From positions 124,001 through 188,000 of IMG/VR virus record IMGVR_UViG_3300020186_000013: a stretch of 64,000 nucleotides of DNA; one strand, 5' to 3'. The notes under the pieces were generated by a model. The model was not told the DNA's origin and ran no database searches. It saw only the letters and a program-made list of their open reading frames with translations. Below are positions 10,565-60,123 of the stretch, one piece after another. The translations under genes and the position numbers were made by a program. How positions within the stretch are numbered: the first letter of the stretch is position 1; each line of letters begins with the position of its first letter.

Positions 10565-13500
10565 TTACCGAAGCAAGCTCAGCCAGTCGGAGCCGCCCTT
10601 CTTCATAACCGCTGGAGTTCGGAACTTTGCAAGTTCCGGATAGCGGTCGAAGATGGCGTCCTTCTTCGGGTCGCCCGTCGAGCGAAAGTTGACCAAGTTA
10701 TTGCAGTCCGCCTGCTGGAGCTGGAACTTCGACGCAAGCTCGGAGAGCTCGTCCTGGAACTTGTCAAAGATCTTGGCCTCGTCCACGGACAGTTGAGGCT
10801 TGACGGGGGTGGCGGGTGCTGCGGGAGCGGCCTTCTGGATCGGCGGGATCGACGGGGAGACGGACTCGTCGCCCTGGTAGCCCGGACCGGTCAACGGGGT
10901 CGTACGCCGGTTCGGGTAGGTGAGGTCGATCGGCCGACGGGTGGACGCGGGCGGCATGCCGAGGTTCTGGTTGTATTGGTCCGCCACCTTGCGGTCCTGC
11001 TCGCGTTTCACCGCAGCGACCATCAGCGTCTTCGCGTAGTCGCCGTACATTGGCCCTTTAACCGGGTCGCGGCGGATGTTCGTAAGTTGGGTCGACGACA
11101 GTTTCGCCGGGTCTCCGTATTCCTTCAGAAATAGGGCCTGTTGGTCCGCCATCCGATTCGCCGAGGCAGCCTCCTCCTCCTTCACCTTGTGTTTTCGCTC
11201 GGTGGCCTCTTGCGAAAACTGGGCTTGGAACTTCTGGTCCAGTGTCTTGTGCCACTCGGGGTCGGTGACGTTCTGGGACCGGATCTCGGCGATGCGTTCT
11301 AGGGCTTTCTGCTTCAGCTCCGGCGGCGTGTCCGGATTATTAGCCCGCCGGTGCAGCAACGCATACTCGCTAGCGGCGTTGTTCTGCTCGTCTTGGGCGA
11401 TGTCGCGACGCTCTTGGATTATCGAGCCACCAGTGTGCCCGAGCAGCCGAGCCTGGTGGGCGGGGTTCAAGAAAAAGTTGGCGGCGTCACTGACAGGTGA
11501 CTCCGACTTGCCGGCGAACAGGTTAAACGCATCTTGCAGGGACTGCTCGTTGCGATTTCTCGTGCCCTCGTAATTGCCGCCGATTGCGTTCCCGATATCC
11601 TCGCCCACATCGTTACCCACCATCAGCGGTCGCACGAACTTGCCGAGGAACCCGGCCACGCCCATACGTCCCGGTGCTGCCGGGACACCGGGAGCCGGAT
11701 TGACCGCCTTAGTCCCGGCCAGGGCGTTGCCGATGCGAGAAAAGAGACTACCCTCGCTGCTGACGGTACGTAGGACACGACCGGTTGCCGCCGCAGTTAG
11801 CCCGCCTGCCGCCAGAGCCGCGGGAGCCGCCTTGGCCACGTCAGCCAAACCGATATTCGGCATCTGCGGCCCGCTGTCGGCTTGATTCTGCCCCGGCATG
11901 ACGCCGCCACCGGGGTGGTAGTATTCTTCCTGCCCGTCGCCGTCCTCGTCGCCGTCACCCGGAACACCGCCCATGCCTACCCCACGCCGGCCTGGGTACT
12001 TCGACTGCATGTTGTGGCCGTGGATCTGCCCGGTCAAGACACCCCAGGCGTTCTGATCGAGGCCGTGACCGATCGCCCCGATGCCGCCCTCTTCGATATG
12101 CTGCTGAGCCTGGGTAGGGTCCATGTGGTGTAGGTAGTTCTGGCCGCGTCGGAACCCGCCGTTGTACACGACCGGGTTCTGCTGCTGAGCCTTCTGCTGA
12201 ATGTTGGCGGTCGTCGCCGTGCCGACGCCACCGACGTAATCGTACGACGGCTTCGGGGCCGCAGGGGAGGCCCCAGTTGAGGCCCCAGTAGGAGCCCCAG
12301 TCGCCGCTGGTGGCGAGACCTGCGGTGCAGGCGGCGGTGCAGGCGGCGGTGCAGGCGTCGTCTTCGGGGCGGTCGACGCGATCGGTTTGGGGGCAGTGGC
12401 CGGGTCGTCGGCCTTCTTCAACCGAGACTTCTTGTCCTCCGACCACTTCATTAGGCTGGCCCAGTTCTTCTTGGGGGCCGGTGCCGGTGCGGGTGCCGCC
12501 GGGGGTTTCGCGGCCACGGGCACGCTCGGTCCCGACAGGTCGGGTTTGCTGGTCGGCTCGGGCTGCCGGACCATACCGACCCGGCCGAAGTCCACGGCCC
12601 GTGACAGACCCGGAACAAAGGACGTGCCCAGCTCGTTCGACGTGCCGCCGCGTTGGGCCGCTTCGAGCAGGCTGGCCTTCTGCCCCGACCCGTACATCTT
12701 GGTCATCCAGTCGGGGTCGTGGGCGACGTTCGCCATGCCCCGGATCATCTCGGCCTGGAACGGCGGCGGCTCGGCGTGGACGGTGACGTTGTCGACACCG
12801 AAGTGCTCGAACTCCTTCAGCATCGACGGCCGGACCTTGGTGCCGATCGTGTGGTGTAAGATCGGCCGTTCTAGGTACTTGCCCAGGGCCTTCTTCGGGT
12901 GAACGGACTCGTGCCCGTCGCGGGGCTCGTAAGTGTGCTCCAGCGTCGAGTACGGGACGACGTCGTCCTGTACATGGTCGCCGTGCTCCTCGGTAAGCCG
13001 GACGTGGTTGATGAGGCCGCGTGACAAGACCTCCAGGTTCCGCCGGTTGACCTTGAGCCCGGCCCCCCGCATGGCGTCACGCATGGCCCCCATGAAGTAC
13101 CGCCGGCCCTCACCGATGCCCTTGTGCTCGATCACGGTCGACGGATTCGGCCACCCGTCGGAGAGTATGTCACCAGCTTCGACCTGGTCTCCTGGTTTCA
13201 CCCTCGGGTCGTACCCACGACCGACATAGTGCTGTTGCCCGTCGATGGTGATGAACTTGCCGCCCGCCGGGGCGTCCTCAATCCGCTGGACGATGCCGTC
13301 GACGGTGGAGTGGGCTGCACCGCCCTTGAACGTCTTGGGGGCCTGGATGAGCTGGTTGACGGCCTCGAAGCCGCTCACGGACTTCTCCTGACCGGCGACG
13401 CCGCCGGAGTGCTTGGCACTCAGCTGGCCTTGCTGGAGTGGCTCGGACAGGGCCTGGGCGGCTTGGAGGCCGATCTGCTCGCCCCGCCCAGGGAGACCGC

Positions 13501-14422
13501 CCCGCTCGCGAACGCCGACGTCACGGGAGTAGACACCGCCATCGGGTGAGCCGCCGACCAACGCACTGCGGACGAGGATCTTGTCGTGGCCGAGGGCCTT
13601 CATGTGTTTGAGGATCTTTGGCGTCAGCATCATGTGCCGCTTGTACGGCCCGACGTCCTGGGCCAGGAGGGCACCCTCACTGTCCATGTCGTCGACATCG
13701 ACTGGGAGGCCCCGGTTGGCAGGGTACTCCTGGTCGTGGTCGAGGGCACTGACCATGAGCCGGTGGCTGATCTGGTTCAACTGCTTGGACAGGAAGCCAG
13801 CGTCCTGGGTGGCGAACTTGGTCGCCATGACGCCCTTGCGGGCACCGTACGTGCCAGCCCAGTATTCGGCCGGAGTGAGCCCCTGGCTGTACGAGCGTAT
13901 CACAGGCAGGGGGATGACGTTGTCGTGGTGGTCGGTGTACAGCATGTCGCTGCCACGGAGCGACGACAGGTTCATCTCGTTGCCGCGACTGCCCGACTGG
14001 ACCTGACGGGCCAGGGGGTTGCCCTCGGCGAGGGACTCGGCGTACACGTCCTTCATCTGCTGATCTTGTGCAGCCCCAGCCTTCCGGATGATGAGTTCGT
14101 GCCGCTGCGTGTCGGTGAGCTTGTCGTCGTTGAGGATCTTGTCGATGTCGCCCTGGAGGCTGACGCCGATCTTGTGGGCCGACTTGGCCTTGAGGAGGTG
14201 TTCAAGGGAAAAGCTGTTGCCGCCCGAGCGGGTGGCGACGTGCCGGCCGACGTCGGCCAGCTTCTTCGAGACTTCCAGATACTTCTCGGGGCTCTTCTCA
14301 GCGATCTCCCGGAGAAGGGCGTTCATGCCCTTCTTGTCCATCACCCGGTCGTAATTGCGGTACTCCTCCGGCAACGCTTCGTTGATGAGGAGCTGACCCA
14401 TCGTTGTGCGGAGGGGAGGCAT
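10565..14422 (-). CDS. Phage RNA polymerase beta' C-terminal subunit (bridge helix, trigger loop) fused to a ~660-aa low-complexity extension
   Basis: TTMGQLL (cf. TTVGR), SGSRGN, SYSQGLTPAEYW...GARKGVMATKFATQDAGFLSKQL (bridge helix) and GEQIGLQAAQALSEPLQQGQLSAKHSGG (trigger loop). RNAP similarity ends near residue 620. Confidence 0.9.
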   Translation of the reverse strand: MPPLRTTMGQLLINEALPEEYRNYDRVMDKKGMNALLREIAEKSPEKYLEVSKKLADVGRHVATRSGGNSFSLEHLLKAKSAHKIGVSLQGDIDKILNDDKLTDTQRHELIIRKAGAAQDQQMKDVYAESLAEGNPLARQVQSGSRGNEMNLSSLRGSDMLYTDHHDNVIPLPVIRSYSQGLTPAEYWAGTYGARKGVMATKFATQDAGFLSKQLNQISHRLMVSALDHDQEYPANRGLPVDVDDMDSEGALLAQDVGPYKRHMMLTPKILKHMKALGHDKILVRSALVGGSPDGGVYSRDVGVRERGGLPGRGEQIGLQAAQALSEPLQQGQLSAKHSGGVAGQEKSVSGFEAVNQLIQAPKTFKGGAAHSTVDGIVQRIEDAPAGGKFITIDGQQHYVGRGYDPRVKPGDQVEAGDILSDGWPNPSTVIEHKGIGEGRRYFMGAMRDAMRGAGLKVNRRNLEVLSRGLINHVRLTEEHGDHVQDDVVPYSTLEHTYEPRDGHESVHPKKALGKYLERPILHHTIGTKVRPSMLKEFEHFGVDNVTVHAEPPPFQAEMIRGMANVAHDPDWMTKMYGSGQKASLLEAAQRGGTSNELGTSFVPGLSRAVDFGRVGMVRQPEPTSKPDLSGPSVPVAAKPPAAPAPAPAPKKNWASLMKWSEDKKSRLKKADDPATAPKPIASTAPKTTPAPPPAPPPAPQVSPPAATGAPTGASTGASPAAPKPSYDYVGGVGTATTANIQQKAQQQNPVVYNGGFRRGQNYLHHMDPTQAQQHIEEGGIGAIGHGLDQNAWGVLTGQIHGHNMQSKYPGRRGVGMGGVPGDGDEDGDGQEEYYHPGGGVMPGQNQADSGPQMPNIGLADVAKAAPAALAAGGLTAAATGRVLRTVSSEGSLFSRIGNALAGTKAVNPAPGVPAAPGRMGVAGFLGKFVRPLMVGNDVGEDIGNAIGGNYEGTRNRNEQSLQDAFNLFAGKSESPVSDAANFFLNPAHQARLLGHTGGSIIQERRDIAQDEQNNAASEYALLHRRANNPDTPPELKQKALERIAEIRSQNVTDPEWHKTLDQKFQAQFSQEATERKHKVKEEEAASANRMADQQALFLKEYGDPAKLSSTQLTNIRRDPVKGPMYGDYAKTLMVAAVKREQDRKVADQYNQNLGMPPASTRRPIDLTYPNRRTTPLTGPGYQGDESVSPSIPPIQKAAPAAPATPVKPQLSVDEAKIFDKFQDELSELASKFQLQQADCNNLVNFRSTGDPKKDAIFDRYPELAKFRTPAVMKKGGSDWLSLLR

Positions 14423-14437
14423 CCGTGCCCCTAAGAT

Positions 14438-14455
14438 CTAGAAACCGGAATCTAG
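14438..14455. promoter_or_regulatory. 18-bp pseudo-palindrome CTAGAAACCGGAATCTAG (recurrent motif)
   Basis: Intergenic, 16 bp upstream of the beta'-C start; near-copies at 24329, 34896 and 57877, and inside genes. Confidence 0.55.
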
Positions 14456-14477
14456 CGGCCCGCAACGTGCGGGCCGC
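14455..14477 (-). terminator. GC hairpin (10-bp stem, 3-nt loop); possible terminator or processing site
   Basis: GCGGCCCGCA-ACG-TGCGGGCCGC just after the 14487 stop; weak U-tract. Confidence 0.4.
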
Positions 14478-14486
14478 ACGAGGTGC

Positions 14487-15389
14487 TTAGCGGCGGTTCT
14501 TCTTGGCCTTCTTGCCGGTCACGGGGAGTGCGGGCAAGGGCGGCTCAATCTTCTTGTCCTCGGGGGGCAGGTCGAACAGGTCGTCAACCTCGGCTGCCTC
14601 AGCCGGCTGCACGGCCGACAGGAAGTTCGACGGCGGGGCCATGACGACCGGTTCCTCGGGTTGGAGGAAGTCGTCCGTGCCGTCATCGACCTCGACAGGG
14701 GGCGGGGCCTCGGGGATCGCCTCTTCTTCGACCTCGTCGGTCTTGAGGAAGTCCATCGGGTCGCCCAGGACCGGCTTTTCGCTGCCCTCGCCGTTGGCGA
14801 CCGGGGCACCGTAGATCTCGTCAGGCGTCCGCGTCTCCTTGAGCACGTGAGCCGGACCTCGACCGAGAATGGCGATGTCCCGGTACTGGTCCTCGGTGAT
14901 CGTCTCGCGGGTCACGAGCATCTCCAGCCGCGTCCGCAGCCGCATGACCAAGGCGTTGTCGCCGAACACGTGGATCGTCACCGGCCCGGTCGGGACCATG
15001 TTGACGGCCGAGTGAACGACCGCGTCGACCTCGCGGGCGTCGGTGAGCATCAGCTGACCAGGCACCCGACTGGGGACCGTGGCCATGCCGTTGACGGGAA
15101 TGTCGCCGATTTTGACGCGGTGCCCGCCGGGACGACCAGTCTTCAGTGCGGCGACCTGCTGAGGCGTCGGCTTGCGGTCCTTCGACCGGTAGTACCGGTC
15201 GGTGTCCTTGTCGTTAAGGTCGGCGAGCGAGGCCAAGTTGGTGGGCGGGCCAGGCATGATCGCCTCGCCCGGCTTCATGGTTGTGCTGTCAACGGGCTGG
15301 CCGGCGAACACCGACGGAGTGCCCGATCGGTAGTACCGGTCAGCGTTGTTGGTGTCGAACCGGTTGCGAAGGTCGTCCTGCTGACTCAT
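14487..15389 (-). CDS. Hypothetical protein with an acidic C-terminus
   Basis: AGGAG RBS before MSQQDD; internal repeat DRYYRS x2. Confidence 0.75.
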   Translation of the reverse strand: MSQQDDLRNRFDTNNADRYYRSGTPSVFAGQPVDSTTMKPGEAIMPGPPTNLASLADLNDKDTDRYYRSKDRKPTPQQVAALKTGRPGGHRVKIGDIPVNGMATVPSRVPGQLMLTDAREVDAVVHSAVNMVPTGPVTIHVFGDNALVMRLRTRLEMLVTRETITEDQYRDIAILGRGPAHVLKETRTPDEIYGAPVANGEGSEKPVLGDPMDFLKTDEVEEEAIPEAPPPVEVDDGTDDFLQPEEPVVMAPPSNFLSAVQPAEAAEVDDLFDLPPEDKKIEPPLPALPVTGKKAKKNRR

Positions 15390-15390
15390 G

Positions 15391-15672
15391 TCATTCTCCT
15401 GGCTTCGGCCCCGCAATCAGTCGGGCACCGGGCGGTGGTTTGGGAAGTTCCAACCGGTCGCAGACGACCGTCTCGCCGATGCCGAGGTTCCTCAGCATGC
15501 GGTTGAAGTCGTCCTGGCCGACGATGGAGATGGCCTGGCTCCGGCCACCTCCGTACTCCGCAGCGACGCCGATCGGGGTGCCGGTGTCCTGGCGGATCAG
15601 GATCTGATTGACCTGCAAGACCAGTGGCCTGCTGTTGCCGATCCCGTCCTTGAGAATCAACTCTACGATCAC
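15391..15672 (-). CDS. Hypothetical protein
   Basis: 93 aa; fills the gap between neighbours; GTG start. Confidence 0.65.
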   Translation of the reverse strand: MIVELILKDGIGNSRPLVLQVNQILIRQDTGTPIGVAAEYGGGRSQAISIVGQDDFNRMLRNLGIGETVVCDRLELPKPPPGARLIAGPKPGE

Positions 15673-15683
15673 GGGTCACCCCA

Positions 15684-16436
15684 CTACGCCGCCGGACGCC
15701 GACGAAGGCTGGCGATCATGGCGGCTTTGTTCATGGTCTCTTCCAGGCCCTTGTGGGAGTACGCCACGCCCGCGTCGGCAGCCGCCTTGCCGCCGCCTCC
15801 GGGTGGTGCACCGCCCATGTCGGGCTGCCCGCCCATCGGGGGCATGCCGCCGGGGGCACCCATGGCCGAGTCCTGCTGCCCGCCGGACTGCTGCTTCGCG
15901 GCCATCTGGGTCAGATCGGTCGGCGTGGCGATCATCTCGCTGGCCGGGATCTTGACACCGAGGGCGTCCGCAATGCGGGCGATCATCTTCGACATCTGCA
16001 TGATGGCGACGTTGACGTCGATCTTGGGCTTGATCTGCCCGGCCATGTTCGAGCCAGACTGAGCCGACCCGCCCTGGACGGCCTGGAGGATCTGGTCCAT
16101 CTTGGCCGTCATCGCCGGGTCGCCGCCACCCCCGCCGCCCGGAGGCGGCATCGGAGGCATGCCCATCATGGACGGGTCCATCGGAGGAGCACCGCCGCCG
16201 GACGGGTCACCGCCGGGAGGCGGGCCACCCATCATAGACGGGTCCATCGGAGGGGCACCGCCGCCCATGGACGGATCGCCGCCAGGAGGAGGGGCACCAC
16301 CGCCGCCGGTCATGGAGGGGTCACCACCGGGCACGAACGCGAGTTTGGTGAAGTTCGCCGACATCTTGCGGCGGGCTTCCTTCACCAACTCGGGGTTACA
16401 CAGGTGGTCGCCGTAAGGCGTCATCAATTGGCTCAT
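15684..16436 (-). CDS. Pro/Gly/Met-rich, probably disordered protein
   Basis: 250 aa; repeated GGDPSM and GAPPMDPSMMG units; TKLAF motif. Confidence 0.75.
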   Translation of the reverse strand: MSQLMTPYGDHLCNPELVKEARRKMSANFTKLAFVPGGDPSMTGGGGAPPPGGDPSMGGGAPPMDPSMMGGPPPGGDPSGGGAPPMDPSMMGMPPMPPPGGGGGGDPAMTAKMDQILQAVQGGSAQSGSNMAGQIKPKIDVNVAIMQMSKMIARIADALGVKIPASEMIATPTDLTQMAAKQQSGGQQDSAMGAPGGMPPMGGQPDMGGAPPGGGGKAAADAGVAYSHKGLEETMNKAAMIASLRRRPAA

Positions 16437-16506
16437 GGAAATCCCTTTCCCGCAGAGGATACCGTATCGAGTTCAAGTTTACTGCAACGCCACGCCACAG
16501 AGAAGA

Positions 16507-18255
16507 CTACTCCATGATGTGCACGGGAGTGTCCTCGGTGATCTCGCCCTGGTGGAGGGCCGCGAGGGCGTCCTGCTTGTTCCGGAAGACGCGGGGCCGA
16601 CCCTTCTCCTTCTTGGCCGTGCTGGCGTGGTGCAAACCGCCCAGGTACTCCTGGCCGGGCACGTGCACGGGGCTCTTGAAGTCGGCCGGGGATAGAAGGT
16701 TTTTCGACGGCAGCATCCGCTCCAGGGCCTCCTTCTTGGCCTCCTCGGAGGTCGGCACGTGGAACTGCATGGCGTCACCGTCGAAGTCAGCGTTGAACCC
16801 CTTGACGATCAGCGGGGACACCTGCATCGTGTCGCCCTTCACCAGCTTGGGGCGAAACGCCATGATACCGAATCGGTGGAGAACGGGTGCCCGATTGATG
16901 AACACCGGACGGTCTTCCATCTCCTCCTGGAGGATCGACCGGGCCTTGTCGGTCTTATCCTTGACGTGCTGGAGGGCCTGGCTGATCGGCATCCCCTGGC
17001 GGTGCATCCGCCGGACGAGGAACTTGGAGTACACCTCGAACGCCTTCGACTCGGGGATGCCTACCGTGTCCATGTCGTAGTCCGGGTTCGGGCTGATCAC
17101 CGCCCGGCCGACGTTGTCGACAGTCGAGGACAGGAGCTTCCTTTGCACCGTGCCGAACTTGGGGGACGTGCCGAAGATGCTCTTCAAGATGCCCTTGACG
17201 TTCTTGTCTTGGCTCTTCTGGGTGATCGGATCGCCCAGGCCGGTGACCGCCTTGAAGGCGTGGTACACGGCCAACCGTTCGGCCCCCGCGTTGTCGTGGC
17301 CGACCATGCCCTTCATCTCGCCGAGGTTCTTGTTGGCCTCGATCAGCTCCTTGTAGAGGTAGTTCGGGTCCGATACCAGCGGGATGCCCGACTGCCCCAT
17401 CATCGACACCGGGCGGAACGCAGGAGGCAGGACGGGGGCGTGATCGAGCATCCAGTCCTTGGGGTGCAGGCCGAGGCTCTGGGCACTCTTCAGGTAGCCG
17501 AGCTTGCGAACCGCCTCGTCCCGCTTACTACGACTCGACGACTGAACCTGGGTCCTAGCGGTCGCCAGCTCCTTGGTCAGGTTGATGTCCTCCAACGCGG
17601 CCTTGAGGGCCTTCGGGCCGGTGCCGTGCCCGCCAATCGTCTCAGTGCCCGCCAACACGCCCTCGAACTGCTTGGCCGTCAACCCGAGGATTCGCCGCAT
17701 CGGCTCCTCCATGACAGGGTTGGGCATGGGCTCGTCGAACTTAATCTTCGACCACTGCTTGCCGCCGTGCCCGCCGGTCATCGCCGGGTCGAACAGACCC
17801 CCGGCCACTGGCTTCAAGTCCCGGTCGAAGTTGACCGTCTCGCCGTGCGTAAGGACGCGGTTGCCGCCCAAGGCGTCCACGTCCTTGTTGGTCATGGCCA
17901 TGATGTGAGTGCGAGGGCCATCCCGGACGACATTGATCCCGGACGCCTTGAGCTGGTGGTGGAACTTGTCGTACACCATCGGGGTCTTCACAGCACTGGG
18001 CATATGTCCCTGCATGAACTGCAACCAGTATTGCTCGTTCCGCTGACCCCGGATACTGCCCACGTCCCGGAGATTCTCGACGGCCCCGTGGGACAGGAGG
18101 GCATTCACGTCGAGCATCGAGATCCGCTTGGAGTTCGACACCAGGACGTTGTTGGCGAAGTACAGGTGGATGCCGTCGACAGTGACGTCGTACACGTCGA
18201 CCAGCCCGTTCGCCTTCGTGACGCCCCGGTAAGGGCCGATGTACGCCACCTTCAT
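16507..18255 (-). CDS. C-intein (41 aa) + RNAP beta C-terminal tail + beta' N-terminal catalytic half
   Basis: VYDVTVDGIHLYFANNVLVSN|S (intein blocks F/G), SKRISMLDVNALLSHGA (beta GQRFGEMEVWALEAYGA equivalent), GGLFDP, PVLPPAFRP, GRAVISP, NRAPVLHRFGIMAF, catalytic FNADFDGDAM. Confidence 0.95.
   Translation of the reverse strand: MKVAYIGPYRGVTKANGLVDVYDVTVDGIHLYFANNVLVSNSKRISMLDVNALLSHGAVENLRDVGSIRGQRNEQYWLQFMQGHMPSAVKTPMVYDKFHHQLKASGINVVRDGPRTHIMAMTNKDVDALGGNRVLTHGETVNFDRDLKPVAGGLFDPAMTGGHGGKQWSKIKFDEPMPNPVMEEPMRRILGLTAKQFEGVLAGTETIGGHGTGPKALKAALEDINLTKELATARTQVQSSSRSKRDEAVRKLGYLKSAQSLGLHPKDWMLDHAPVLPPAFRPVSMMGQSGIPLVSDPNYLYKELIEANKNLGEMKGMVGHDNAGAERLAVYHAFKAVTGLGDPITQKSQDKNVKGILKSIFGTSPKFGTVQRKLLSSTVDNVGRAVISPNPDYDMDTVGIPESKAFEVYSKFLVRRMHRQGMPISQALQHVKDKTDKARSILQEEMEDRPVFINRAPVLHRFGIMAFRPKLVKGDTMQVSPLIVKGFNADFDGDAMQFHVPTSEEAKKEALERMLPSKNLLSPADFKSPVHVPGQEYLGGLHHASTAKKEKGRPRVFRNKQDALAALHQGEITEDTPVHIME
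18133..18255 (-). mobile_element. Split intein, C-terminal fragment (IntC, 41 aa; ends Ser-Asn, Ser+1)
   Basis: Block F VYDVTV..H.YFAN and block G VLVSN; own ATG with a GAGGA RBS. Confidence 0.9.
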
Positions 18256-18656
18256 CGCTGCTTCCTCGTCCAGAAGTCGTGTAGGCCGGACAGGGCTTGG
18301 CCGGTCATGCCACGCAGCTTCATCATCAAACTCCGCTGCATGGCCCGACGGGGGTCGATGCTCTGGGGCGTGGCGGCTTCGACCGGGGCCGGCTTGGCTG
18401 CCGGCTTGGCCATCGGCTTACCCGGCCTCGCCCGCCGCCGGGGCGTGGGCTTCTCGGAAACCTCGCCGAACCTTTGGAACTTGACCGGGGCGAACGGTAA
18501 GTCGACCGGCGGACGGTTGCCCGCCGTCATGAGCGTCTGCTGGCCTGCCCCGAGGGGTGAGCCCGACTGCCCCTCGCCGGGGTCGGCCGGGTCGACGGCA
18601 GCCGTCTTCATGCGGAGAGCTGCCGCCTTGGCCGCGAGAATGTTGAGCCCGTCCAT
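18252..18656 (-). CDS. 134-aa low-complexity protein inserted between the two intein halves
   Basis: ATG at 18656 overlaps the beta stop (TGATG); its own TGA overlaps the IntC ATG (ATGA); AKAAA and MKTAA motifs; no endonuclease motif. Confidence 0.7.
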   Translation of the reverse strand: MDGLNILAAKAAALRMKTAAVDPADPGEGQSGSPLGAGQQTLMTAGNRPPVDLPFAPVKFQRFGEVSEKPTPRRRARPGKPMAKPAAKPAPVEAATPQSIDPRRAMQRSLMMKLRGMTGQALSGLHDFWTRKQR

Positions 18657-21600
18657 CACGCCCCCTGTAGTTCGTCGCCGACGACCAGGTCGCCGGCCAG
18701 TTTCCTCGATCCGTCCGCCAGGATGATCTCGTGGTTCCTGGTGACCTCCAAAACACGGCCAGTGTCGGTCACGACCTCCATGATGTCGATCGGCTTGACG
18801 GCGAACGTGAACCAGTCGACGACCGGCATCCACATGAGCTTGCCGCCCGTGGCTTTCTTGGTCAGGACGTTGATGGCCAGTTTCTTCTGCACGACCTCGG
18901 CGATCGACACCAGGCCGCTCGACTCGGTATGGAGGAAAACCCGCTCGGTGAAGCAGCCGCTCTCGCCGCCCTTGCTGGGCGTCTCGTCCATGCCGTACCC
19001 GCCGCCGCCACGACCCTGGCCCTTGCTTTCGGCCGTGTGGTGCAACTTCATAAAGAACCGGTTGCCCGTGTGGACGCCGGGGATCTTGGACCCCGTGGCC
19101 GGATCGACGATGTCCTCGGTCGAAGTCAGGCCGTGCTTCCGCAGCTCGTCAATCGTGAACTGGTTTAAGTCCTTGATGCTACCGAAGTCTTCCAGCTTGT
19201 ACCTCTTGCCTGTCAACGCGGCAATCTTGCCTAGCTGGGCCTCGACCATCTGGGCTGGATTGGTACGACTGATCACACCGAGGGGGTTGAGCAGGATCTC
19301 GTAGGGCTTACCGTTGCGGTCGTGCGGCATCTGGTGGTCGGGGACGACGGCACTGATGACGCCCTTGTCGCCGTACCGGCCGGAGAGTTTGTCACCCACC
19401 TGCATCTGTGAAGAAGACTTAACGAGGACGACAGGCCCGTCCTTGCCCCGTACGACGTCGGTAACGACCCCAGAATCATGATGCTGCCACACAACGGATT
19501 GGTCATTGTGTCCCGCCTGCTTCTTCTTGTGGACCTTGTTGTCTGCCCGGTCGTTCTCGCGTGCGGCCAAAATGAGAGGTTGGCCGTGCTCGATTTTGGT
19601 GCCAGGTTTGATGATGCCGTCGTCGTCGAGGGACGCCAGCGTCTCCCGGTCAAACTTGCCGGGGAACAAACTGATGAAGTTCTTCTTCCCCATCTTGTGC
19701 TTGTCGTCAACCATCACCTCGTGGTGGTACATGTGGTCGCTCGACAGCCGCTTCGCCGCCGTCTCCGAGATGACCTGAGCGTCCTCGAAGTTGTACCCCT
19801 TCCACGGCGTGTACGCCACGCGGAAGTTCGCACCGAGGGCCGCAGCCCCGGTGTGGTCGGTGTAGTTGCTCTTGGCCAAGAGCTGGCCCGCTTTGAATGT
19901 GTCCCCTGGCTTCAGTGCAGGAGTATTGTGGATGTACGTCTTCCGGTTGAAGGGAAAGTTGTGATAGAGATCGACACGATCTTTGCGTCCGTCTGCGTAT
20001 TGGACGTCCATCCCTCCGTCACTGATCCCAAGGACCCGACCCCCGTGTTCACCAGCATGCACGGCCCCGAGATGACGTCCGTATTCTTCTTCAAAAGATC
20101 TCGCTCCACCCGATCCTGGAAGGCCCGATTGAACCAGGGGTGCTTCTGCGTTCGTAAGTGGTAGTGCTTGAGTGAGCATCCGAGACGCCATAGCGACCCG
20201 TTGCCCTTTGACCATGCTCTTGAGCGGGACCATGTTGCCCAGGGGCGAGAAGGCATTCTCAAAGTGGGGCAACTCGAATTGGACTTCGTTGCGTGGGACA
20301 TATGCGATCTTGCCTCCCTTCATGACCGGGATACGTTTCGCGGTCGACGCCAGTCCGCCGGGGAACGCGATCGCCGCCTCGGCCAGGTCCTGGGGGCTCT
20401 TCCAACCAAGCCTACCCGTCCTAACGTCCCGGAACTCGGAGTACATGCGACCGTCGCCGCCTTTTCGTGCCCCCCGAGCCATGTTCAGGTCGATGCCAAC
20501 GCGGAAACTCTCGGGCGTCCGCAAGGGGTCCATGAACCCCATATGACCGGGCTGCACGCTCCGGGCGTCGTCGGGAACCGACTCCATCGACGGGATGCCG
20601 CCTTCACCCAGGCGGGTGATCCGGCTCTGCTTGTCGAACACCTCGGCAGGGTTGATCTCTTCGATCGCCTGGCCCAGGCCAGAGCCCAGGAGCGTCTGCT
20701 CGATTTGCCGGGTCAGTGCCCCTGACGGCATGTCTTTCAGGTGTCCCTTCATGCTCATCTTGTGAAACAGCATCTTCTGGACGCGACCGTGGTCGCGGGC
20801 CACCCGCTCGGAGATCAGGTCCTCGGGACCCAGCACGGTCTGGAAGTGCGGGGCGTCCCGGTCGTCGACTTCGTCCTCGCCCCGACTGACGGCCAAGAGC
20901 TTCTTGGTTGCCGCCAGGATGGTGTCCTTATTCATCCGGGTGTGGGGGTGTTTGAGCGTGTACTTGGTGACCTCGGGGTCGACCTCCATGTCCTCGAACT
21001 TCTTGACCAGGGCCAGGCGACGGTGCTGCTCGTCTGGGTTGTCCCGGTCGACCTTACTCAGAATCTTGTTCTGGAGCTTGGTCAGTACCCCGCCCTCAGA
21101 CTTGAGCATATTGCTCTGGTACAGCTCGGACCCCCAGTGCTCATACAGCTCTCGGTCGGTCGTACCCATCGCCTTCAGGAGCGGCAGCAACGGCATCTCA
21201 GCTTGGCCGATCTTGATCTTGAACACGCCCTTGGCCGGATCGAGCAGGTAACGGTGGGAGACGCCCTTGCCGGGCAGGATGTTGGCGTGGGACTCCAGCT
21301 CACCGTTGTCCTTGCGACGGGTGAAGACACCGGGCATGAGCCGCTGCTGGTGGTTCAAAGTGTAATCGTTACCGCCGTGGACAAACGTGCCCATGTTCGT
21401 CAAGTGAGGGACGCGGGCGATAACCTGCTCACGGCGATCGACGAGAGCACCCGTGGCGTTGTCGGTCAACTCCCACGTGCCCTTCATGCGGCGGGCCAGG
21501 GTGCCGCCAGTCAGGAGGGCTTGCTTCCGTTGGTCGATACTGAAGTGGTCAGGGTCGATGTACTCCGGACTGTGGAGCCGGAGAGTGTGCCGGACGTTGG

Positions 21601-21772
21601 AAACCGGCTGAATGCCCTGAGCCGCCTTCAGGACGTTGCCGTAGATGTTCTGCCGCGTCTTGACGTGGTCGCCAAAGTCGCGGATGTGGGACTCCGGAAG
21701 CACGGGCGGCGGTGGCGGCGTGCTGCCGGGCAGGAGGGACGGACCCTTATCGGGGATGAGACTGTCAGGCAT
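18656..21772 (-). CDS. Phage RNA polymerase beta subunit (lacks its C-terminal tail) + N-intein
   Basis: RITRLGEGG, DPLRTPES, MASRMLTQALP, GYNFEDA, GDKLSGRYGDKGVI, LNPLGVISRTN and MKLHH are all beta signature equivalents; residues 940-1038 are intein. Confidence 0.95.
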   Translation of the reverse strand: MPDSLIPDKGPSLLPGSTPPPPPVLPESHIRDFGDHVKTRQNIYGNVLKAAQGIQPVSNVRHTLRLHSPEYIDPDHFSIDQRKQALLTGGTLARRMKGTWELTDNATGALVDRREQVIARVPHLTNMGTFVHGGNDYTLNHQQRLMPGVFTRRKDNGELESHANILPGKGVSHRYLLDPAKGVFKIKIGQAEMPLLPLLKAMGTTDRELYEHWGSELYQSNMLKSEGGVLTKLQNKILSKVDRDNPDEQHRRLALVKKFEDMEVDPEVTKYTLKHPHTRMNKDTILAATKKLLAVSRGEDEVDDRDAPHFQTVLGPEDLISERVARDHGRVQKMLFHKMSMKGHLKDMPSGALTRQIEQTLLGSGLGQAIEEINPAEVFDKQSRITRLGEGGIPSMESVPDDARSVQPGHMGFMDPLRTPESFRVGIDLNMARGARKGGDGRMYSEFRDVRTGRLGWKSPQDLAEAAIAFPGGLASTAKRIPVMKGGKIAYVPRNEVQFELPHFENAFSPLGNMVPLKSMVKGQRVAMASRMLTQALPLTNAEAPLVQSGLPGSGGARSFEEEYGRHLGAVHAGEHGGRVLGISDGGMDVQYADGRKDRVDLYHNFPFNRKTYIHNTPALKPGDTFKAGQLLAKSNYTDHTGAAALGANFRVAYTPWKGYNFEDAQVISETAAKRLSSDHMYHHEVMVDDKHKMGKKNFISLFPGKFDRETLASLDDDGIIKPGTKIEHGQPLILAARENDRADNKVHKKKQAGHNDQSVVWQHHDSGVVTDVVRGKDGPVVLVKSSSQMQVGDKLSGRYGDKGVISAVVPDHQMPHDRNGKPYEILLNPLGVISRTNPAQMVEAQLGKIAALTGKRYKLEDFGSIKDLNQFTIDELRKHGLTSTEDIVDPATGSKIPGVHTGNRFFMKLHHTAESKGQGRGGGGYGMDETPSKGGESGCFTERVFLHTESSGLVSIAEVVQKKLAINVLTKKATGGKLMWMPVVDWFTFAVKPIDIMEVVTDTGRVLEVTRNHEIILADGSRKLAGDLVVGDELQGA
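18659..18955 (-). mobile_element. Split intein, N-terminal fragment (IntN, 99 aa; Cys1)
   Basis: CFTERVFL (block A), G.VSIAEV, LEVTRNHEI (block B TxxH), ends AGDLVVGDEL followed shortly by the stop. Confidence 0.9.
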
Positions 21773-21790
21773 TCCGTTGCCCCTAACGAG

Positions 21791-22888
21791 TTACGCGACC
21801 GGCTGTTGGTCCGCCGACGAGTGGGCGATCGGCTCCGGTGTGGCGAAGATCTCGGTCGGGGATTGGTTGAACTTGCGACGGTCGCGACGCTGGAGGGCCT
21901 TCTGCAAGACAGCCGAACGGCTTCGCTTCCGCATCTTGTCGTACACGACGGCCCCAGTCAGCAGGCTCGACAGACCGGCGTACATGCCGTACCCGCCCAT
22001 GGCCTGGCCGAGGACGTTAGAACTTCCCTGGCCGAGATAGTCGGATAGAGCAGCCTGTTTCTCGACGAAAGCGTCATACAGCCGATCAAGGGCCTCGTCG
22101 AGGGCCTTCTTCTCGCCCCACTTGTGACCGCAAGAGTTGCACGCCCCGCTGTACGGGTCACCCTCCATGCTCGCACCGCATTTCGGGCAGTCCTCGCCCT
22201 TGAACGTGTGGTCGCCGGCAGACTTGGCCACGGCCTTGGGCTTGTCGTACTGCGATAGCAGAGCGTCGTGGAACTCCTGGCGGGCCGAATCGAGGGCCTG
22301 CTCGCGTTCCGTCTTGCGACGACTTTCCATCACCGCGTCGACGCCCTTCCAGCCGAGGCCCAGACCGCCAAGACCGCCGGCCAGCATCGACAGACCGTAC
22401 CACGGGATGCCGCCCTTGGTCGTCGCGTCACCGCCGAGTAACCACGGGACCGGGGTGGCCTCCTTGTCCATGGCTGCCTTCCTCTTCGGCACGTCCTCGT
22501 CTTCTTCCTCGGCCGGGATCGGCAGGGGCAGCATCGCCGACCCCGCCGTACTCCGTGCCCCGGCCATGTTCTGGCGAAGCATGTGGTGCAAGCCGACCGC
22601 CCCTCGGGCACCGGCCCCGACGCCGAGGCCGATCCCGAGGATCTTGCCGACGTCGCCCATCGCGGACTCCCGCAACGCCGTGTTCTTGGCCTCGCTTATG
22701 GCCTGGCTGATCACGAGCTGCTGGGGGGTCGGGGCCGAGCCAGTGAGCGAGTCCAAGGCCCCACGGCCCAGGTCGACGACGGGCTTGGCGGCGGCTCCGA
22801 TGGCGTCGCCCACGGCCCCGAGGAAGCCCTCTTTTTGCATCTCCTCGCGGACCTTACTGAGCACCGACTGGCAGGTTAGGCTGTCCAT
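21791..22888 (-). CDS. Gly-rich virion-like protein with an inserted Zn ribbon
   Basis: 365 aa; glycine zippers; CPKC..CNSC flanked by AKSA and EKKA. Confidence 0.75.
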   Translation of the reverse strand: MDSLTCQSVLSKVREEMQKEGFLGAVGDAIGAAAKPVVDLGRGALDSLTGSAPTPQQLVISQAISEAKNTALRESAMGDVGKILGIGLGVGAGARGAVGLHHMLRQNMAGARSTAGSAMLPLPIPAEEEDEDVPKRKAAMDKEATPVPWLLGGDATTKGGIPWYGLSMLAGGLGGLGLGWKGVDAVMESRRKTEREQALDSARQEFHDALLSQYDKPKAVAKSAGDHTFKGEDCPKCGASMEGDPYSGACNSCGHKWGEKKALDEALDRLYDAFVEKQAALSDYLGQGSSNVLGQAMGGYGMYAGLSSLLTGAVVYDKMRKRSRSAVLQKALQRRDRRKFNQSPTEIFATPEPIAHSSADQQPVA

Positions 22889-37502: not shown

Positions 37503-38159
37503 TTACTCCATTGATTTCGGGGGAGGTGGTCGCGGTCGGGGCGGCTTACTTTCTTTAGGCCGATCCCGTTCGCGTCGCTCGATTTTGCCGTTCACGTGGT
37601 AGACGGTCGAGGCCCCGTCTTCGTTCAACACAACAAGTCTGTCTGCGGCGGTGAAGGTGATGACCAGGCCCTTGGGAATGTCTACAACGCCGTCGTCGAG
37701 TACCACCAGTTGGCCCAGCCCCTCCTTCTGCGTGACGACCGGCGTCGACGAGCGTCGCAACCGCTCCCCGATCCGTTTGTTCAGTTCTCTCTCGTCGGGC
37801 AAGGCGGCTTGCGTGCGGTCAACCAACTCCTGTCGGCCGTCGGGGCCGTCGAGGTAACTGGTCCCATCGGGGTTGACGACAACGGAGTAGCCCGGTGCCC
37901 CCGCGATCAGGGTGCGGCGAGGCTGAGGTTTCAAATCGTCCCGGACTTCCCGTGGCATTGACGCCACGGGCAAGGACAGGGCGAAGGGTGCGGTGGTTCG
38001 AGGCTCGGGAATCCGTTCCCTCGGTGGCTGTCGCGGCTCGGGCGTCCGTTCGGCGTCGGGCAACCCCACGACCAGTAGGGTGACCATCCCGCCGAGACCG
38101 CCCGAGATCAGCACGCCGCAGAAAAGAACGGTCCAGAGGTTGGACCGTTTACGCCTCAT
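37503..38159 (-). CDS. Membrane-anchored hypothetical protein
   Basis: N-terminal TM helix; Pro-rich linkers. Confidence 0.65.
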   Translation of the reverse strand: MRRKRSNLWTVLFCGVLISGGLGGMVTLLVVGLPDAERTPEPRQPPRERIPEPRTTAPFALSLPVASMPREVRDDLKPQPRRTLIAGAPGYSVVVNPDGTSYLDGPDGRQELVDRTQAALPDERELNKRIGERLRRSSTPVVTQKEGLGQLVVLDDGVVDIPKGLVITFTAADRLVVLNEDGASTVYHVNGKIERRERDRPKESKPPRPRPPPPKSME

Positions 38160-38968
38160 TAGAAGAGATCCTCCGCAGCGAGGTGCTGCCGAACGATGCT
38201 GGGGCCGGACTTGAGCAGCTCATCGTAGTTGATGATCCGCTCCTGCATGGAGCGGTTCCGCAAGCGGCGGATGTTGGGACGCGGGATGCGACGCGGTGAC
38301 AGGTCGAGGAACTCGAACACCCGCTGCATCTCACTCTCGAAGTGCAGAGTCAGATCCTTGTACCGGACGAGGAGCTGGTCCTCGCTGCTGGCCTGGACCT
38401 TGGCCCGTGTCGACTCCCAGTCCCACACGAAGGCCGTCAGCTCAGCCGAGTCAAGGCGAATCGCTGAAGGGCGGACGTGGGACAGAGGTTCGCCGCCGCC
38501 GACGAACCACCGCTGGGTCTTCTCGGCCTGCTTCTTCGACACGAAACAAGCAATCGGGTTACGGAGGACGTGGACGACACAGAAGTCGCCCTCGTGCGTC
38601 CGCTGCTTGAACAGGTCGTACAGCTCGTACTGTCGCACCGCCGCGTACGGGGTACGGACGCCGATCACCCGTTCGTCGTGGAGCGGGTTGTCGAACACCT
38701 GGTTGGCCAGGTAGCGGTTAGGATTGGTCTCGGGCGTGAACCACTCGGGCAGCCGAGCGGGGTCCCGCGTCGGGCCGAAGTATTCCTCGTGGGACGCCCG
38801 ACGGATCGCCTCACTCGGGTTGAACAGGTTAAGGTGGCAAACCGCCTCCCCAAGCTGATTGATGACGCCCTGAACAACCGCCGCACCGCTCCGCACCTCG
38901 CCGACCAGGGCGAAGTTGAGGACAGTCGCCGGTCGTTTGGACGAAGACGCTGACATGGCACTTAACAT
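38159..38968 (-). CDS. Sulfotransferase-like (Stf0-type P-loop), divergent
   Basis: FALVGEVRSG, HVLRNPIACFVS, VRYKDL, FEFL, IINYDEL. Confidence 0.6.
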   Translation of the reverse strand: MLSAMSASSSKRPATVLNFALVGEVRSGAAVVQGVINQLGEAVCHLNLFNPSEAIRRASHEEYFGPTRDPARLPEWFTPETNPNRYLANQVFDNPLHDERVIGVRTPYAAVRQYELYDLFKQRTHEGDFCVVHVLRNPIACFVSKKQAEKTQRWFVGGGEPLSHVRPSAIRLDSAELTAFVWDWESTRAKVQASSEDQLLVRYKDLTLHFESEMQRVFEFLDLSPRRIPRPNIRRLRNRSMQERIINYDELLKSGPSIVRQHLAAEDLF

Positions 38969-42076: not shown

Positions 42077-42150
42077 ACCCACCGGCGGGACTCGAACCCG
42101 CATAATCCCGCTTAGAAGGCGGTCGCTCTACGCGATTGAGCTACGGGAGG
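42077..42150 (-). tRNA. tRNA-Arg(TCT)
   Basis: TAGCTCAA D-arm, CCGC-CT-TCT-AA-GCGG anticodon arm, GCGGGTTCGAGTCCCGC T-arm; CCA not encoded. Confidence 0.85.
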
Positions 42151-42154
42151 ATAG

Positions 42155-42226
42155 TCGGGGTGGCAGGACTCGAACCTGCGACTTCATGGTTATGAGCCAT
42201 GCGAGCTGCCTCTGCTCTACACCCCA
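42155..42226 (-). tRNA. tRNA with a CAT anticodon (Met; initiator-like D stem; Ile2 not excluded)
   Basis: TGGGGTG/CACCCCG acceptor, GAGC/GCTC D stem, CATGG-CT-CAT-AA-CCATG, GCAGGTTCGAGTCCTGC. Confidence 0.9.
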
Positions 42227-57894: not shown

Positions 57895-58451
57895 ATGTCG
57901 ACGACCCAGCACGACCCCTTGACCGTCCGGTTGGGGAGCAGCTCGTCGACGGCCTTGATCACGCCGGGGTCCTCGGGCCGGTAGTCGTGGCCGCACAGCC
58001 AACCGCCGGACTTGACCTTGGGCATCCACGCCAGGATGTCGGCCTTGACGAAATCGTAGGTGTGGTCGCCGTCGATGAACACAACATCCTGGGAGCCGTC
58101 CGCGAATGTCGCTGCGGCTTGCACGCTAGAGAGCTGCATGGGGTGCACGTGCGAGCCGACGCCACCCTTAATCATGTTGTTGATAAACGCCGGGCACATG
58201 TCGCCGGGGATGTCGATCCCCCACGGGGCACTGTTGGTGGCCATGATCCCGGTCCACGTGTCCACAGCGTAGATGGTGGGCTGCTTGCCGAGGTTGATGA
58301 TCTCGACGGCCAAGAAGGCGGCACTGCGGCCGAGCCACGAGCCGACCTCGACGACGCTGCCGTTGGCGGGCACCCGCCGGGCGATCTCCCGGTAGAGGTC
58401 GAACAGCGGGCCGTCCGAGAAACCCGGAATGGTCTCGAAGAAATGGTTCAT
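57891..58451 (-). CDS. Class I SAM methyltransferase (Methyltransf_24-like)
   Basis: VEVGSWLGRS, AVDTW, FIDGDHTY, GGWLCGHDY. Confidence 0.85.
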   Translation of the reverse strand: MNHFFETIPGFSDGPLFDLYREIARRVPANGSVVEVGSWLGRSAAFLAVEIINLGKQPTIYAVDTWTGIMATNSAPWGIDIPGDMCPAFINNMIKGGVGSHVHPMQLSSVQAAATFADGSQDVVFIDGDHTYDFVKADILAWMPKVKSGGWLCGHDYRPEDPGVIKAVDELLPNRTVKGSCWVVDI

Positions 58452-59569
58452 TAGTTTGAGATCCCCTCGAAAGTAACACACGCCTTCTCGCCGCCCAGCG
58501 GGATGTGGTGCTTCAACCAAATGCGGAGTTCGAGACCGATCGCAGAGTCCAGTTCCATGACCGACGTCGTCTGCCCGTACGAGAACCGGAACTGCATGCG
58601 TTGCTGCGTGATCCCCCGGCCGTTCGCCCCGACGATCACCGGGCACAAGGGGAACGACCCCTGCGTGTAGTTGATCAGGTCGTCCGCATTCTTGAAATAC
58701 TGCCGCGTCCCCGGCACTTCGAGCTTCGGCCCGGCAGGCTGCCCCAGTGCCTGCGGGTAGATGAACGCGGCCGTGATGATCGAGTCGTCGAACGACAGGT
58801 CCACGGAGATGTTCATCTCGAACGCCGTCAGCGTGAGCACCTTACCGGCAGCCGGGGCGGCGATGAACGTGCTGCCGGAGTCCGCCGGGCTGTAGTGGTA
58901 GTCGCACGCGATCGCCAAGCCGTTCGCCGGGGCGGTGAAGAACGTGATGGTCCCGGCCGCGTAGTCGATCGTGTAGTCGCCGCCCGTGGCCATGCCGTAC
59001 TCGCGTTCCGTCTTGACCACGCCGTCGACTCGGACCACGGGGACGTACGAGCCGTCGTCCGGGGTGAAGATGTAGTCCTCGTCCGAGATCTTGCCATGGC
59101 TCAGGTCGATGACGAACGGGTGATCCAGGTTGAACGTGACCGTGGAACCGTCTCCGGTTCCAACGGCCTCACCGCTGACCTCGACAGACTCCGTGAACCA
59201 CGTCGTCTTGTCCGTGAAGTCCTGGGAGAAGACCATCGCCCGCGTGCCCACCGATACGGGCTTCTGCCAGACGAACTGCGGCGTCTCGAACGAGACCGAC
59301 TGGATGTCGCCGGGCGTGGGCGTGTTGTCGTGGGCCGCGATCAAGCCGCCCTTGGGGTGCCCGGCTACGTCGTTATCGAGGATCGTCTTGTCGCCAGACG
59401 GGAGGGCATCCCTGAACAGCACAAGTACGTCGTCGCCACTCGTCCCGACGCTGTCGAGGGCGATGGAGATGGCCGATGCCCGGATCTCGGCGTCGAACTT
59501 CGACGGGTTGATCGCCCCGTCGGGGAAGTCATCGGCGATCGAGTACGTGTACGTGGTTGGCGTGGGCAT
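58451..59569 (-). CDS. Virion structural protein (tail/baseplate-associated)
   Basis: AVGTGDGSTVTFNL and DYTIDYAAGTITF..APANG are typical phage structural beta-domain patterns. Confidence 0.6.
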   Translation of the reverse strand: MPTPTTYTYSIADDFPDGAINPSKFDAEIRASAISIALDSVGTSGDDVLVLFRDALPSGDKTILDNDVAGHPKGGLIAAHDNTPTPGDIQSVSFETPQFVWQKPVSVGTRAMVFSQDFTDKTTWFTESVEVSGEAVGTGDGSTVTFNLDHPFVIDLSHGKISDEDYIFTPDDGSYVPVVRVDGVVKTEREYGMATGGDYTIDYAAGTITFFTAPANGLAIACDYHYSPADSGSTFIAAPAAGKVLTLTAFEMNISVDLSFDDSIITAAFIYPQALGQPAGPKLEVPGTRQYFKNADDLINYTQGSFPLCPVIVGANGRGITQQRMQFRFSYGQTTSVMELDSAIGLELRIWLKHHIPLGGEKACVTFEGISN

Positions 59570-60123
59570 TAGTTAGTGACCTCCTGAACCAGCAAGGCTG
59601 CGTGCTCCTCAAGCGGTGCACCCGTGACCGGTCGAATCTGTCCGGTGTTCGCAGACACCTTCCACTGGATCTTGACGGTGTGACTACCGGCCGAGACGCT
59701 TGGGATGCGAAGCACCATGGCCCCGGAATCGGCGATGCTCGCCCCAGGCGGGCGGACCATGGCCCCCATGTACGACGTGCCGTCAAACAGGACACTGAAG
59801 CTGATCGCCCGGTTAGCACTTGAGTTGCTGGCACTGAACGTGAACCAGATCAACAGGTCGCAGGCACCTGTGGTGAGCGTAAGGGTCACGCCGGTCAGGT
59901 CCGTGAACGTCGTCGACGTCGTCGTGGTGTCTGACGTTATCCGAACGAACGCGGTCTGTATCGCGAGACTGAGGTTGCCGCCGTACTGCTGCCACTTGGA
60001 GTTGACGGCGTCGTAAACGTACGTCTTCCCGGTAGCCGAGTCGTGGTACGTCTGGCCCCCGACCGGTGAACCGGGGGCAGACGTACGCGACACCTCGTTG
60101 GTCGTACCGAGTTGCTTCGGCAT
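59569..60123 (-). CDS. Tail-fibre-like protein
   Basis: SAPGSPVGGQTYHDS repeat; Thr/Ser-rich C-terminal beta domain. Confidence 0.6.
   Translation of the reverse strand: MPKQLGTTNEVSRTSAPGSPVGGQTYHDSATGKTYVYDAVNSKWQQYGGNLSLAIQTAFVRITSDTTTTSTTFTDLTGVTLTLTTGACDLLIWFTFSASNSSANRAISFSVLFDGTSYMGAMVRPPGASIADSGAMVLRIPSVSAGSHTVKIQWKVSANTGQIRPVTGAPLEEHAALLVQEVTN

Follow-up and report, generated by a model that had tools for sequence, protein, structure and literature searches.

A predicted non-nuclease protein family in the break of a split mini-intein in phage RNA polymerase

Organization of the locus

The DNA analyzed here is a window of 64,000 nucleotides (nt), positions 124,001 to 188,000 of IMG/VR virus record IMGVR_UViG_3300020186_000013, and the subject is a small gene that lies in this window between the two halves of a predicted split intein in the gene for the beta subunit of RNA polymerase. 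The whole virus record is 208 kb long and 93% complete, and no alternative genetic code was applied. The small gene encodes a 134-amino-acid (aa) protein (P0001) that appears to be under purifying selection, shows no recognizable nuclease and belongs to an unnamed family which, in the comparisons described below, occurs nowhere but in this intein break. A role as an accessory to the products of the neighboring genes is tentatively favored.

Three genes make up the locus and all are on the minus strand. The first (18656..21772, -) encodes 1038 aa and ends with a TGA at 18658-18656. It contains a beta-like N-extein, residues 1-939, which runs to the conserved ...KGGESG motif (18956..21772, -), followed by the N-terminal intein half (IntN) of 99 aa (18659..18955, -). 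The N-extein was assigned by Pfam matches to RNA_pol_Rpb2_6 (E = 9.5e-55), Rpb2_3 and Rpb2_2, and its boundary was located. The middle gene (18252..18656, -) consists of 134 codons plus a stop, from an ATG at 18656-18654 to a TGA at 18254-18252. The third gene (16507..18255, -; 582 aa) begins with an ATG at 18255-18253 and encodes the C-terminal intein half (IntC) of 41 aa (18133..18255, -), which ends ...VLVSN before the +1 Ser of the C-extein and was likewise assigned with Pfam and its boundary located. The C-extein (16507..18132, -) joins the C-terminus of beta (SKRISMLDVNALLSHGA...) to an N-terminal portion of beta' that includes the NADFDGD catalytic loop (Pfam RNA_pol_Rpb1_2, E = 5e-28).

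The flanking segments carry the expected splicing blocks. IntN starts with Cys (CFTERV...) and has the T-x-x-H of block B (TRNHE). IntC contains blocks F and G and ends with Asn (...HLYFANNVLVSN), followed by S; its penultimate residue is Ser instead of the usual His. A phmmer search aligns IntN with the N-terminal fragments of split DnaE inteins (4lx3, 4qfq; best E = 2e-3) and with RecA mini-inteins, and IntN has a weak match to positions 9-91 of the Pfam Intein_splicing profile. IntC covers the last 28 positions of that profile (128-155 of 155) and is 88% identical between the window and L002, a related contig with the same three-gene layout. The insertion site is a conserved beta motif just before the beta C-terminus, itself fused to the beta' N-terminal part. 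In most of the related phage loci, about 70, the exteins abut in one frame, and these intein-free relatives have nothing between ...KGGxxG and S[KR]R.... As judged from these sequence features, the flanks are a genuine split mini-intein (IntN of 99 aa plus IntC of 41 aa), which appears to interrupt the beta / beta'-N fusion gene in a large clade of roughly 200-kb phages with a multisubunit RNA polymerase.

The cyanobacterial split DnaE inteins (Npu, Ssp; 4lx3, 4qfq, 2keq) resemble this intein in the alignment of IntN and in the sizes of its two halves. The DnaE halves are encoded far apart and share no operon, whereas here a single operon encodes both halves, about 400 nt from each other and separated by a conserved gene. 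A three-piece intein that includes the middle protein was rejected, since 99 + 41 aa already make a complete mini-intein of DnaE-like sizes.

The three genes are tightly packed. The ATG of the middle gene and the TGA of the beta gene overlap by one base (TGATG), and the TGA of the middle gene lies inside the ATGA that it forms with the ATG of the IntC gene. Both overlaps had been described in the initial annotation, and the coordinates bear them out; the end that it gave for the middle open reading frame (ORF), 18658, spans the whole TGATG, and the actual start is 18656. The starts of the three genes are 1, 2 and 0 modulo 3, so the genes do lie in three frames as annotated. This has no significance, since frame relations differ from genome to genome among the relatives. 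Two Shine-Dalgarno-like motifs can be read from the sequence inside the upstream genes: AGGGGG (18661..18666, -) within the IntN coding region, 4 nt before the ATG of the middle gene, and GAGGA (18263..18267, -) in the 3' end of the middle gene, 7 nt before the IntC ATG. The GAGGAAGCAG context around GAGGA is identical in L002. The middle gene carries the IntN stop at its 5' end and the ribosome-binding site and start of IntC at its 3' end. In related loci with a gene in the break, its stop overlaps the IntC start in 11 of 15 and is at most 11 nt away in the others, and the beta stop and the start of the middle gene overlap or are a few bases apart in all loci inspected. No promoter-like or terminator-like signal above chance was found in 16300-22100. 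Of the earlier statement that the gene is coupled on both sides, the tight packing against both neighbors holds; translational coupling of the three cistrons is a reasonable inference from this layout and would not be unusual. An AGGGG similar to the Shine-Dalgarno sequence of the middle gene also precedes the beta gene and the gene for the C-terminal part of beta' (beta'-C).

Coding status of the middle gene

Many spurious ORFs, long ones among them, occur in all frames of the window. Because of the G+C content of the window (62% GC at the related locus L002) the length of an ORF says little by itself, and the case for a gene rests on conservation. The middle ORF is 74% identical to its 131-aa orthologue in L002. 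The ratio of nonsynonymous to synonymous substitution rates (dN/dS) for this pair is 0.18, and it is 0.12 in the N-terminal 70 codons; the neighboring genes give similar values (0.06-0.25). The differences fall at the three codon positions in the numbers 29/20/52. L003 and L004, independent assemblies of the same phage, have only two synonymous substitutions relative to the window across the three genes, and the L005 copy of the middle ORF has the same single synonymous change as in L003/L004. Therefore, the frame structure is not an assembly artefact.

The wealth of spurious frames would agree with a chance open frame in the GC-rich spacer between the intein halves. However, the dN/dS of 0.18 with substitutions mostly at third positions, the presence of ORFs that share its end motifs at the corresponding position of genomes with 46-55% GC, and the cross-recognition of break-resident ORFs by a hidden Markov model (HMM, see below) leave this reading hardly credible and effectively refute it. 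The middle ORF is thus best described as a real protein-coding gene under purifying selection, as far as comparative data can tell. A longer reading of 193 aa from GTG 18833 was rejected; in L002 this frame is closed five codons upstream of the ATG.

The protein contains Ala (20), Pro (16), Arg (13), Gly (12), Leu (10) and Lys (9). It had been called rich in Pro, Ala and Lys, which is correct for Ala and Pro and not for Lys; it is an Ala/Pro/Arg/Gly-rich protein. A likeness to virion proteins had also been proposed from its K-x-A motifs. The protein has four of these against 1.3 expected from shuffles (P about 0.03), and this excess, which the Ala-rich helix brings about, is a weak signal. No link to virion proteins was found, and the proposed likeness is weakly supported at best.

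A protein family in the intein break

The beta protein has thousands of relatives, and the best 114 usable ones were classed by intein state. At the same site 64 of them end in IntN, 48 are intein-free and 2 have a contiguous mini-intein. The DNA was inspected for 16 split-intein lineages. Comparison of the locus across related genomes, a check suggested in the initial annotation, found the middle ORF conserved, and 15 of the 16 lineages have a gene in the break: the window, L002, L006, L007, L084, L085, L086, L089, L091, L092, L093, L094, L095, L096 and the P0020 locus. These genes encode proteins of 76, 81, 90, 103, 110, 120, 126, 131, 134, 148, 282, 383, 547, 637 and 693 aa, in genomes of 46-72% GC, several of them at 46-55% GC. 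The remaining lineage, L040/L072, has kept the split intein without the gene and has only a 31-nt spacer and a Shine-Dalgarno sequence in its place.

The common parts of these proteins are the two ends. The first is an N-terminal amphipathic helix with the motif h-L-x-x-L-A-A-[KR]-A-A-x-L-R-x-K, which in P0001 comprises residues 1-21 (18594..18656, -). The second is a C-terminal basic helix with an aromatic pair (...R..MQRSL...G.ALSG.HDFW.RKQ), residues 102-134 in P0001 (18255..18353, -). The statement covers the readable sequences: the N-end of L095 is unclear, both ends of L096 are weak and the 282-aa protein of the P0020 locus was unread. Thirteen of the N-terminal 21 residues are identical to those of the 637-aa L006 protein, and in 11 members the mean pairwise identity of the N-terminal helix is 0.34 versus 0.22+-0.03 in shuffles. 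BLASTP gives end-to-end matches of the window protein with L006 (E = 7e-4) and of L006 with L089 (E = 9e-6).

Homology within the family goes beyond shared position. An HMM built from L007, L092 and L094 was used to search 18,474 ORFs, and its top seven hits outside the training set are all resident in the break (L093, L089, L095, L006, L085, the window ORF and L002). The E value of the window protein in this cross-family search is weak (0.07), and its firmest link to the family is through L085, with 40% identity. P0001 lies between an IntN stop and an IntC start and has both the N-terminal motif and the C-terminal helix. Of the 16 split lineages that were sampled, 12 to 14 have a member recognizable by its two ends.

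The middle parts are unrelated between lineages. In the window protein the middle is a Pro/Ala-rich disordered stretch, and in L084, L086, L091 and L093 it is a Gly-zipper-like hydrophobic helix. The middle of L089 has an HExxH-containing region with a weak match to Pfam Zn_peptidase_2 (E = 0.07). L006 and L096 have a large domain in common (E = 9e-11), for which a Pfam search found no match. The 383-aa L089 protein (L089 1715-2866) carries its HExxH in MAHELGHAKQ, followed by a second internal copy of the N-terminal motif and then a Gly-zipper segment; it looks like an extra domain fused to a complete small family member. In L091, at 46% GC, an extra 56-aa ORF (8105-8275) lies between the IntN stop and the family member and overlaps both.

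Outside the break the family was not found where it was sought. The family HMM detected no further copy in the 208-kb genome, nor did it detect one in the 7 kb around beta at about 70 loci that lack the intein, and tblastn of the 134-aa protein against 50,697 phage records gave no match. A word search with this protein returned one orthologue, and an exhaustive HMMER search of 1.84 billion representatives with a two-sequence profile returned only the same one. A word search with a 9-member profile found seven proteins, five already known plus the short P0127 and P0128, whose contigs of about 2 kb are too short for context. Since known members escape such searches, a negative outcome carries little weight. 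A DNA search of phage records with the three-gene unit returned only a 61-nt rpoB-like stretch. A search for related loci with the single beta protein found none, and a search with a 4-sequence IntN alignment found only 4 metagenome loci. On this evidence the gene belongs to an unnamed protein family that appears to reside only in the break of this split intein.

It is possible, though rather doubtful, that the gene is an independent passenger of the 'moron' type, with a function of its own unrelated to splicing, lodged at a permissive intergenic site. Such a passenger would sit in an essential, highly expressed operon and be passed on together with the intein element. It might have a membrane-, virion- or host-directed role, and the helices would be handles for cargo. 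The hypervariable middle with its unrelated inserts fits this, as do the persistence of the split intein without the gene in L040/L072 and the ordinariness of overlapping starts and stops in this genome. However, the same family, and not a series of different genes, occupies the break in 12 to 14 of the 16 split lineages. The searches also found no copy at another place in the genome or around the polymerase genes of relatives without the intein. A generally useful phage function would be expected in these many relatives too.

Absence of a nuclease and comparison with known systems

The middle protein has no Pfam match to the LAGLIDADG, HNH or GIY-YIG families at E<=0.1 and no match in PHROGs. 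Pfam nuclease families are also absent from the relatives of 383-693 aa, and PHROGs is negative for the 637-aa L006 protein as well. For the large L089 form a sequence search of the PDB found no match, and an ESM Atlas search returned viral hypothetical proteins only. Two AlphaFold (AF2) runs of the middle protein gave models of low confidence (pLDDT about 60, pTM about 0.2), with helices at 3-19, 34-46 and 102-133 and mostly disorder otherwise. The C-terminal helix has the highest pLDDT of the model (76-84). A degenerate LAGLIDADG protein was rejected, as hhalign against LAGLIDADG inteins of the same gene family gave a probability of 0.07%. The initial annotation held that the insert is not a homing endonuclease and named a degenerate endonuclease as the finding that would overturn this. 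Profile searches and structure prediction agree with it and show no nuclease family or fold. The protein is predicted to be small, non-nuclease and mostly disordered, with a helix-linker-helix arrangement. Nascent-peptide arrest by the C-terminal motif was also considered; it was dropped, as the motif lies anywhere from 0 to about 16 residues before the stop codon in different members.

Fractured genes, as described by Dassa et al. (2009, PMC2677866), are broken at a split intein and have a free-standing gene for a homing endonuclease in the break. In the model of that paper the stop of the upstream part and the start of the downstream part both come from the invading gene, which overlaps the IntC gene with its 3' end. 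The present locus has the same order of N-part plus IntN, inserted gene, and IntC plus C-part on one strand of phage-like DNA. The insert likewise occupies the position in the intein where endonucleases are canonically inserted, and it overlaps the IntC start with its 3' end. The inserts of Dassa et al. are GIY-YIG or Vsr-like endonucleases, whereas the insert here is a helix-linker-helix non-nuclease of a family of its own, conserved across the sampled lineages. The host gene is also different, namely an RNA polymerase beta / beta' fusion, which is absent from the host genes listed by that paper; the term 'RNA polymerase' occurs 0 times in the text of PMC2677866. The locus can thus be described from its sequence as a fractured-gene layout with a non-nuclease in the slot that is normally the endonuclease's.

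The geometry raises the question of whether the gene is a relic of an endonuclease element that broke the intein, lost its nuclease core and was kept as a translated bridge to IntC. The invader of a contiguous mini-intein, as in the model of Dassa et al., would have brought the IntN stop and the IntC start. The overlap of its 3' end with the IntC start is that of the published model (PMC2677866), conservation is confined to the two ends, and LAGLIDADG inteins are active in the same gene of relatives. On the other side, a bridge needs an open frame and not a particular sequence, yet dN/dS is 0.12-0.18 and the end motifs persist from 46% to 72% GC. No nuclease family or fold is found even in the 383-693-aa versions, the hhalign comparison is negative, and a 31-nt spacer suffices in L040. 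A relic is therefore improbable.

In related phages the contiguous mini-inteins L034, L090, P0025 and P0047 are inserted at the same beta site (…KGGxxG / C … N / S[KR]R…, with slashes at the junctions) and have homologous splicing blocks. They differ in that a few residues link IntN to IntC and that both an endonuclease and a middle gene are absent. The polymerase of P0047, with a contiguous intein, is 73% identical to that of L007, with a split one. Contiguous mini-inteins are rare; of the 66 sampled proteins that bear an intein, 2 have one.

Goodwin et al. (2006, PMC1635734) described inteins in the second-largest RNA polymerase subunits of eukaryotes and their viruses. These also lie at several highly conserved sites of the beta homologue near the active center. 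They were described within a single polymerase ORF, and none was described as split with an intervening conserved gene. A paper on a phage clade with a multisubunit polymerase (PMC7481178), to which the phage of the window is not implied to belong, does not mention inteins. A literature search of incomplete coverage found no paper on a conserved non-nuclease gene in a split-intein break, which is not proof of novelty.

Age, spread and loss of the intein

An N-extein tree of 114 proteins was built with FastTree. Its well-supported branches force at least nine changes between presence and absence of the intein, and one shallow clade holds contiguous, split and intein-free alleles together. The IntN halves average 40% identity versus 58% for the extein. 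In P0008 and P0009 the IntN is 100% identical, whereas the first 400 extein residues are 52% identical. Since an identical IntN stands beside an extein of only 52% identity, this pair indicates that recombination inside the beta gene moved the intein segment between lineages. The split had been called old and domesticated. Its age is supported by the same split intein in 64 of the 114 related beta proteins across the tree and with IntN halves only about 40% identical. 'Domesticated' goes too far because the split form is still gained and lost, as the state changes, the mixed shallow clade and the P0008/P0009 pair indicate. The data support a split form that is old and widespread and still coming and going.

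The same data could suggest that the middle protein is a mobility or retention factor for the IntN-gene-IntC cassette, acting, for example, by recruitment of a nuclease or of recombination to intein-free alleles or by hitch-hiking with the nearby LAGLIDADG inteins. The number of state changes, the three states in one shallow clade and the P0008/P0009 pair would be expected of a mobile cassette, and the cassette has no other gene able to drive movement. However, a protein of this kind, mostly disordered and 76-150 aa long, has no catalytic motif. Losses by recombination with intein-free alleles can give the same patchiness, and co-conversion from a LAGLIDADG intein site about 25 codons upstream could carry the element along. 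It is very improbable that the protein has this function.

The site just mentioned is one of several in this gene. Further inteins are present in the same polymerase of the relatives L040 (6917-12079), L090 and L093 (7607-10749). LAGLIDADG-containing inteins lie in the beta of relatives after ...RTPE and after ...HHTAE, and the latter site is the one only about 25 codons upstream of the split-intein site. Another intein lies in the beta' of relatives, directly after the NADFDG catalytic loop. The phage family thus has at least three intein sites in beta and one in beta', and the polymerase gene appears to be an intein hot spot.

Possible function of the middle protein

With somewhat less than even confidence, the middle protein is taken to be an accessory that acts on the products of the neighboring genes through its two terminal helices. 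The three cistrons would be read as one unit, coupled by termination-reinitiation, and therefore both polymerase halves would be made side by side and in similar amounts. The halves would then trans-splice into a beta / beta'-N chain of roughly 1480 aa, such as intein-free relatives encode directly. The middle protein might hold, pace or help assemble both halves via its terminal helices. It would be a dispensable helper and not a required cofactor because the L040/L072 lineage presumably splices without the gene.

Several observations weigh against this role. The split intein of L040/L072 shows that the protein is apparently not required for trans-splicing, and natural split inteins generally need no helper. 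The packaging adaptor or splicing regulator that the initial annotation had suggested likewise has weak support at best. The unrelated inserts in the middle, such as the HExxH region of L089 and the L006/L096 domain, seem to agree as well or better with a 'handles plus cargo' protein that has a job of its own. Overlapping stop and start codons occur commonly in the genome (e.g., 37503..38159/38159..38968 and 58451..59569/59569..60123), and coupling is plausible but not special because such overlaps are ordinary between its neighboring genes. The absence of the family from intein-free phages is seen only near their polymerase genes, since a family this divergent escapes database searches. A complex prediction for the middle protein with IntN (extended by 20 aa of extein) and IntC (extended by 20 aa) scored 0.00 with no controls run and speaks neither for nor against binding.

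The middle protein could also be a dedicated intein-associated factor of a type new to the literature. It would be either a two-handled tether or chaperone that binds the IntN- and IntC-bearing halves on their emergence from coupled ribosomes and sets the timing or efficiency of trans-splicing, or a protein that promotes retention or spread of the cassette. This reading is unlikely. If it is true, a protein cofactor sometimes takes part in natural split-intein splicing, and the variable middle would correspond, as a place for cargo, to the endonuclease slot of ordinary inteins.

Split inteins are central tools of protein engineering. To our knowledge, their natural history is explained by a single model, in which a free-standing endonuclease gene breaks a contiguous intein. 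We know of no natural accessory factor of protein trans-splicing, and the literature search turned up none. If the middle protein acts on the halves, it would be the first such natural factor and could serve as a starting point for controllable splicing. Should it prove to be a mere passenger, intein breaks would be stable insertion sites for varied cargo genes. Either way, the intein-free, contiguous, split with gene and split without gene alleles form a natural series for the splitting and fusing of inteins.

Other features of the polymerase cluster and the genome

The polymerase cluster occupies 10565-21772 (-) of the window and has an unusual gene architecture. The beta C-terminus continues directly into an N-terminal portion of beta' that extends past NADFDGD. 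A gene of its own (10565..14422, -; 1285 aa) encodes the rest of beta'. Three small genes (about 250, 93 and 300 aa) lie between the beta'-N and beta'-C genes, and the gene order of the cluster is kept in all relatives examined. Pro/Gly/Met/Asp repeats (…GGDPSMGGGAPPMDPSMMGG…) make up much of the 250-aa protein (15684-16436, -). Searches of Pfam and PHROGs gave no match for it, and its counterpart in L002 is 89% identical. A near-identical TTAGGGGCA(A)CGG(A) motif is located just before the ATGs of beta and beta'-C, upstream of 21772 and 14422 (-), and may serve both genes in ribosome binding or regulation. A run of three to four genes, each of about 125-145 aa and with no family assigned, precedes the cluster in every relative (L003 338-1803; in the window upstream of 22888, -).

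Two intein-related observations lie outside the window in the same phage genome. Another intein-like C-terminal block is present within a 1093-aa frame (G000:C1:45977-46069, +), and a LAGLIDADG_3 match (E = 6.6e-6) lies within a 708-aa frame (G000:C1:3049-3213, -). The window also contains two adjacent tRNA genes at 42077-42226 (-), which match Rfam RF00005 with 63 and 53 bits.

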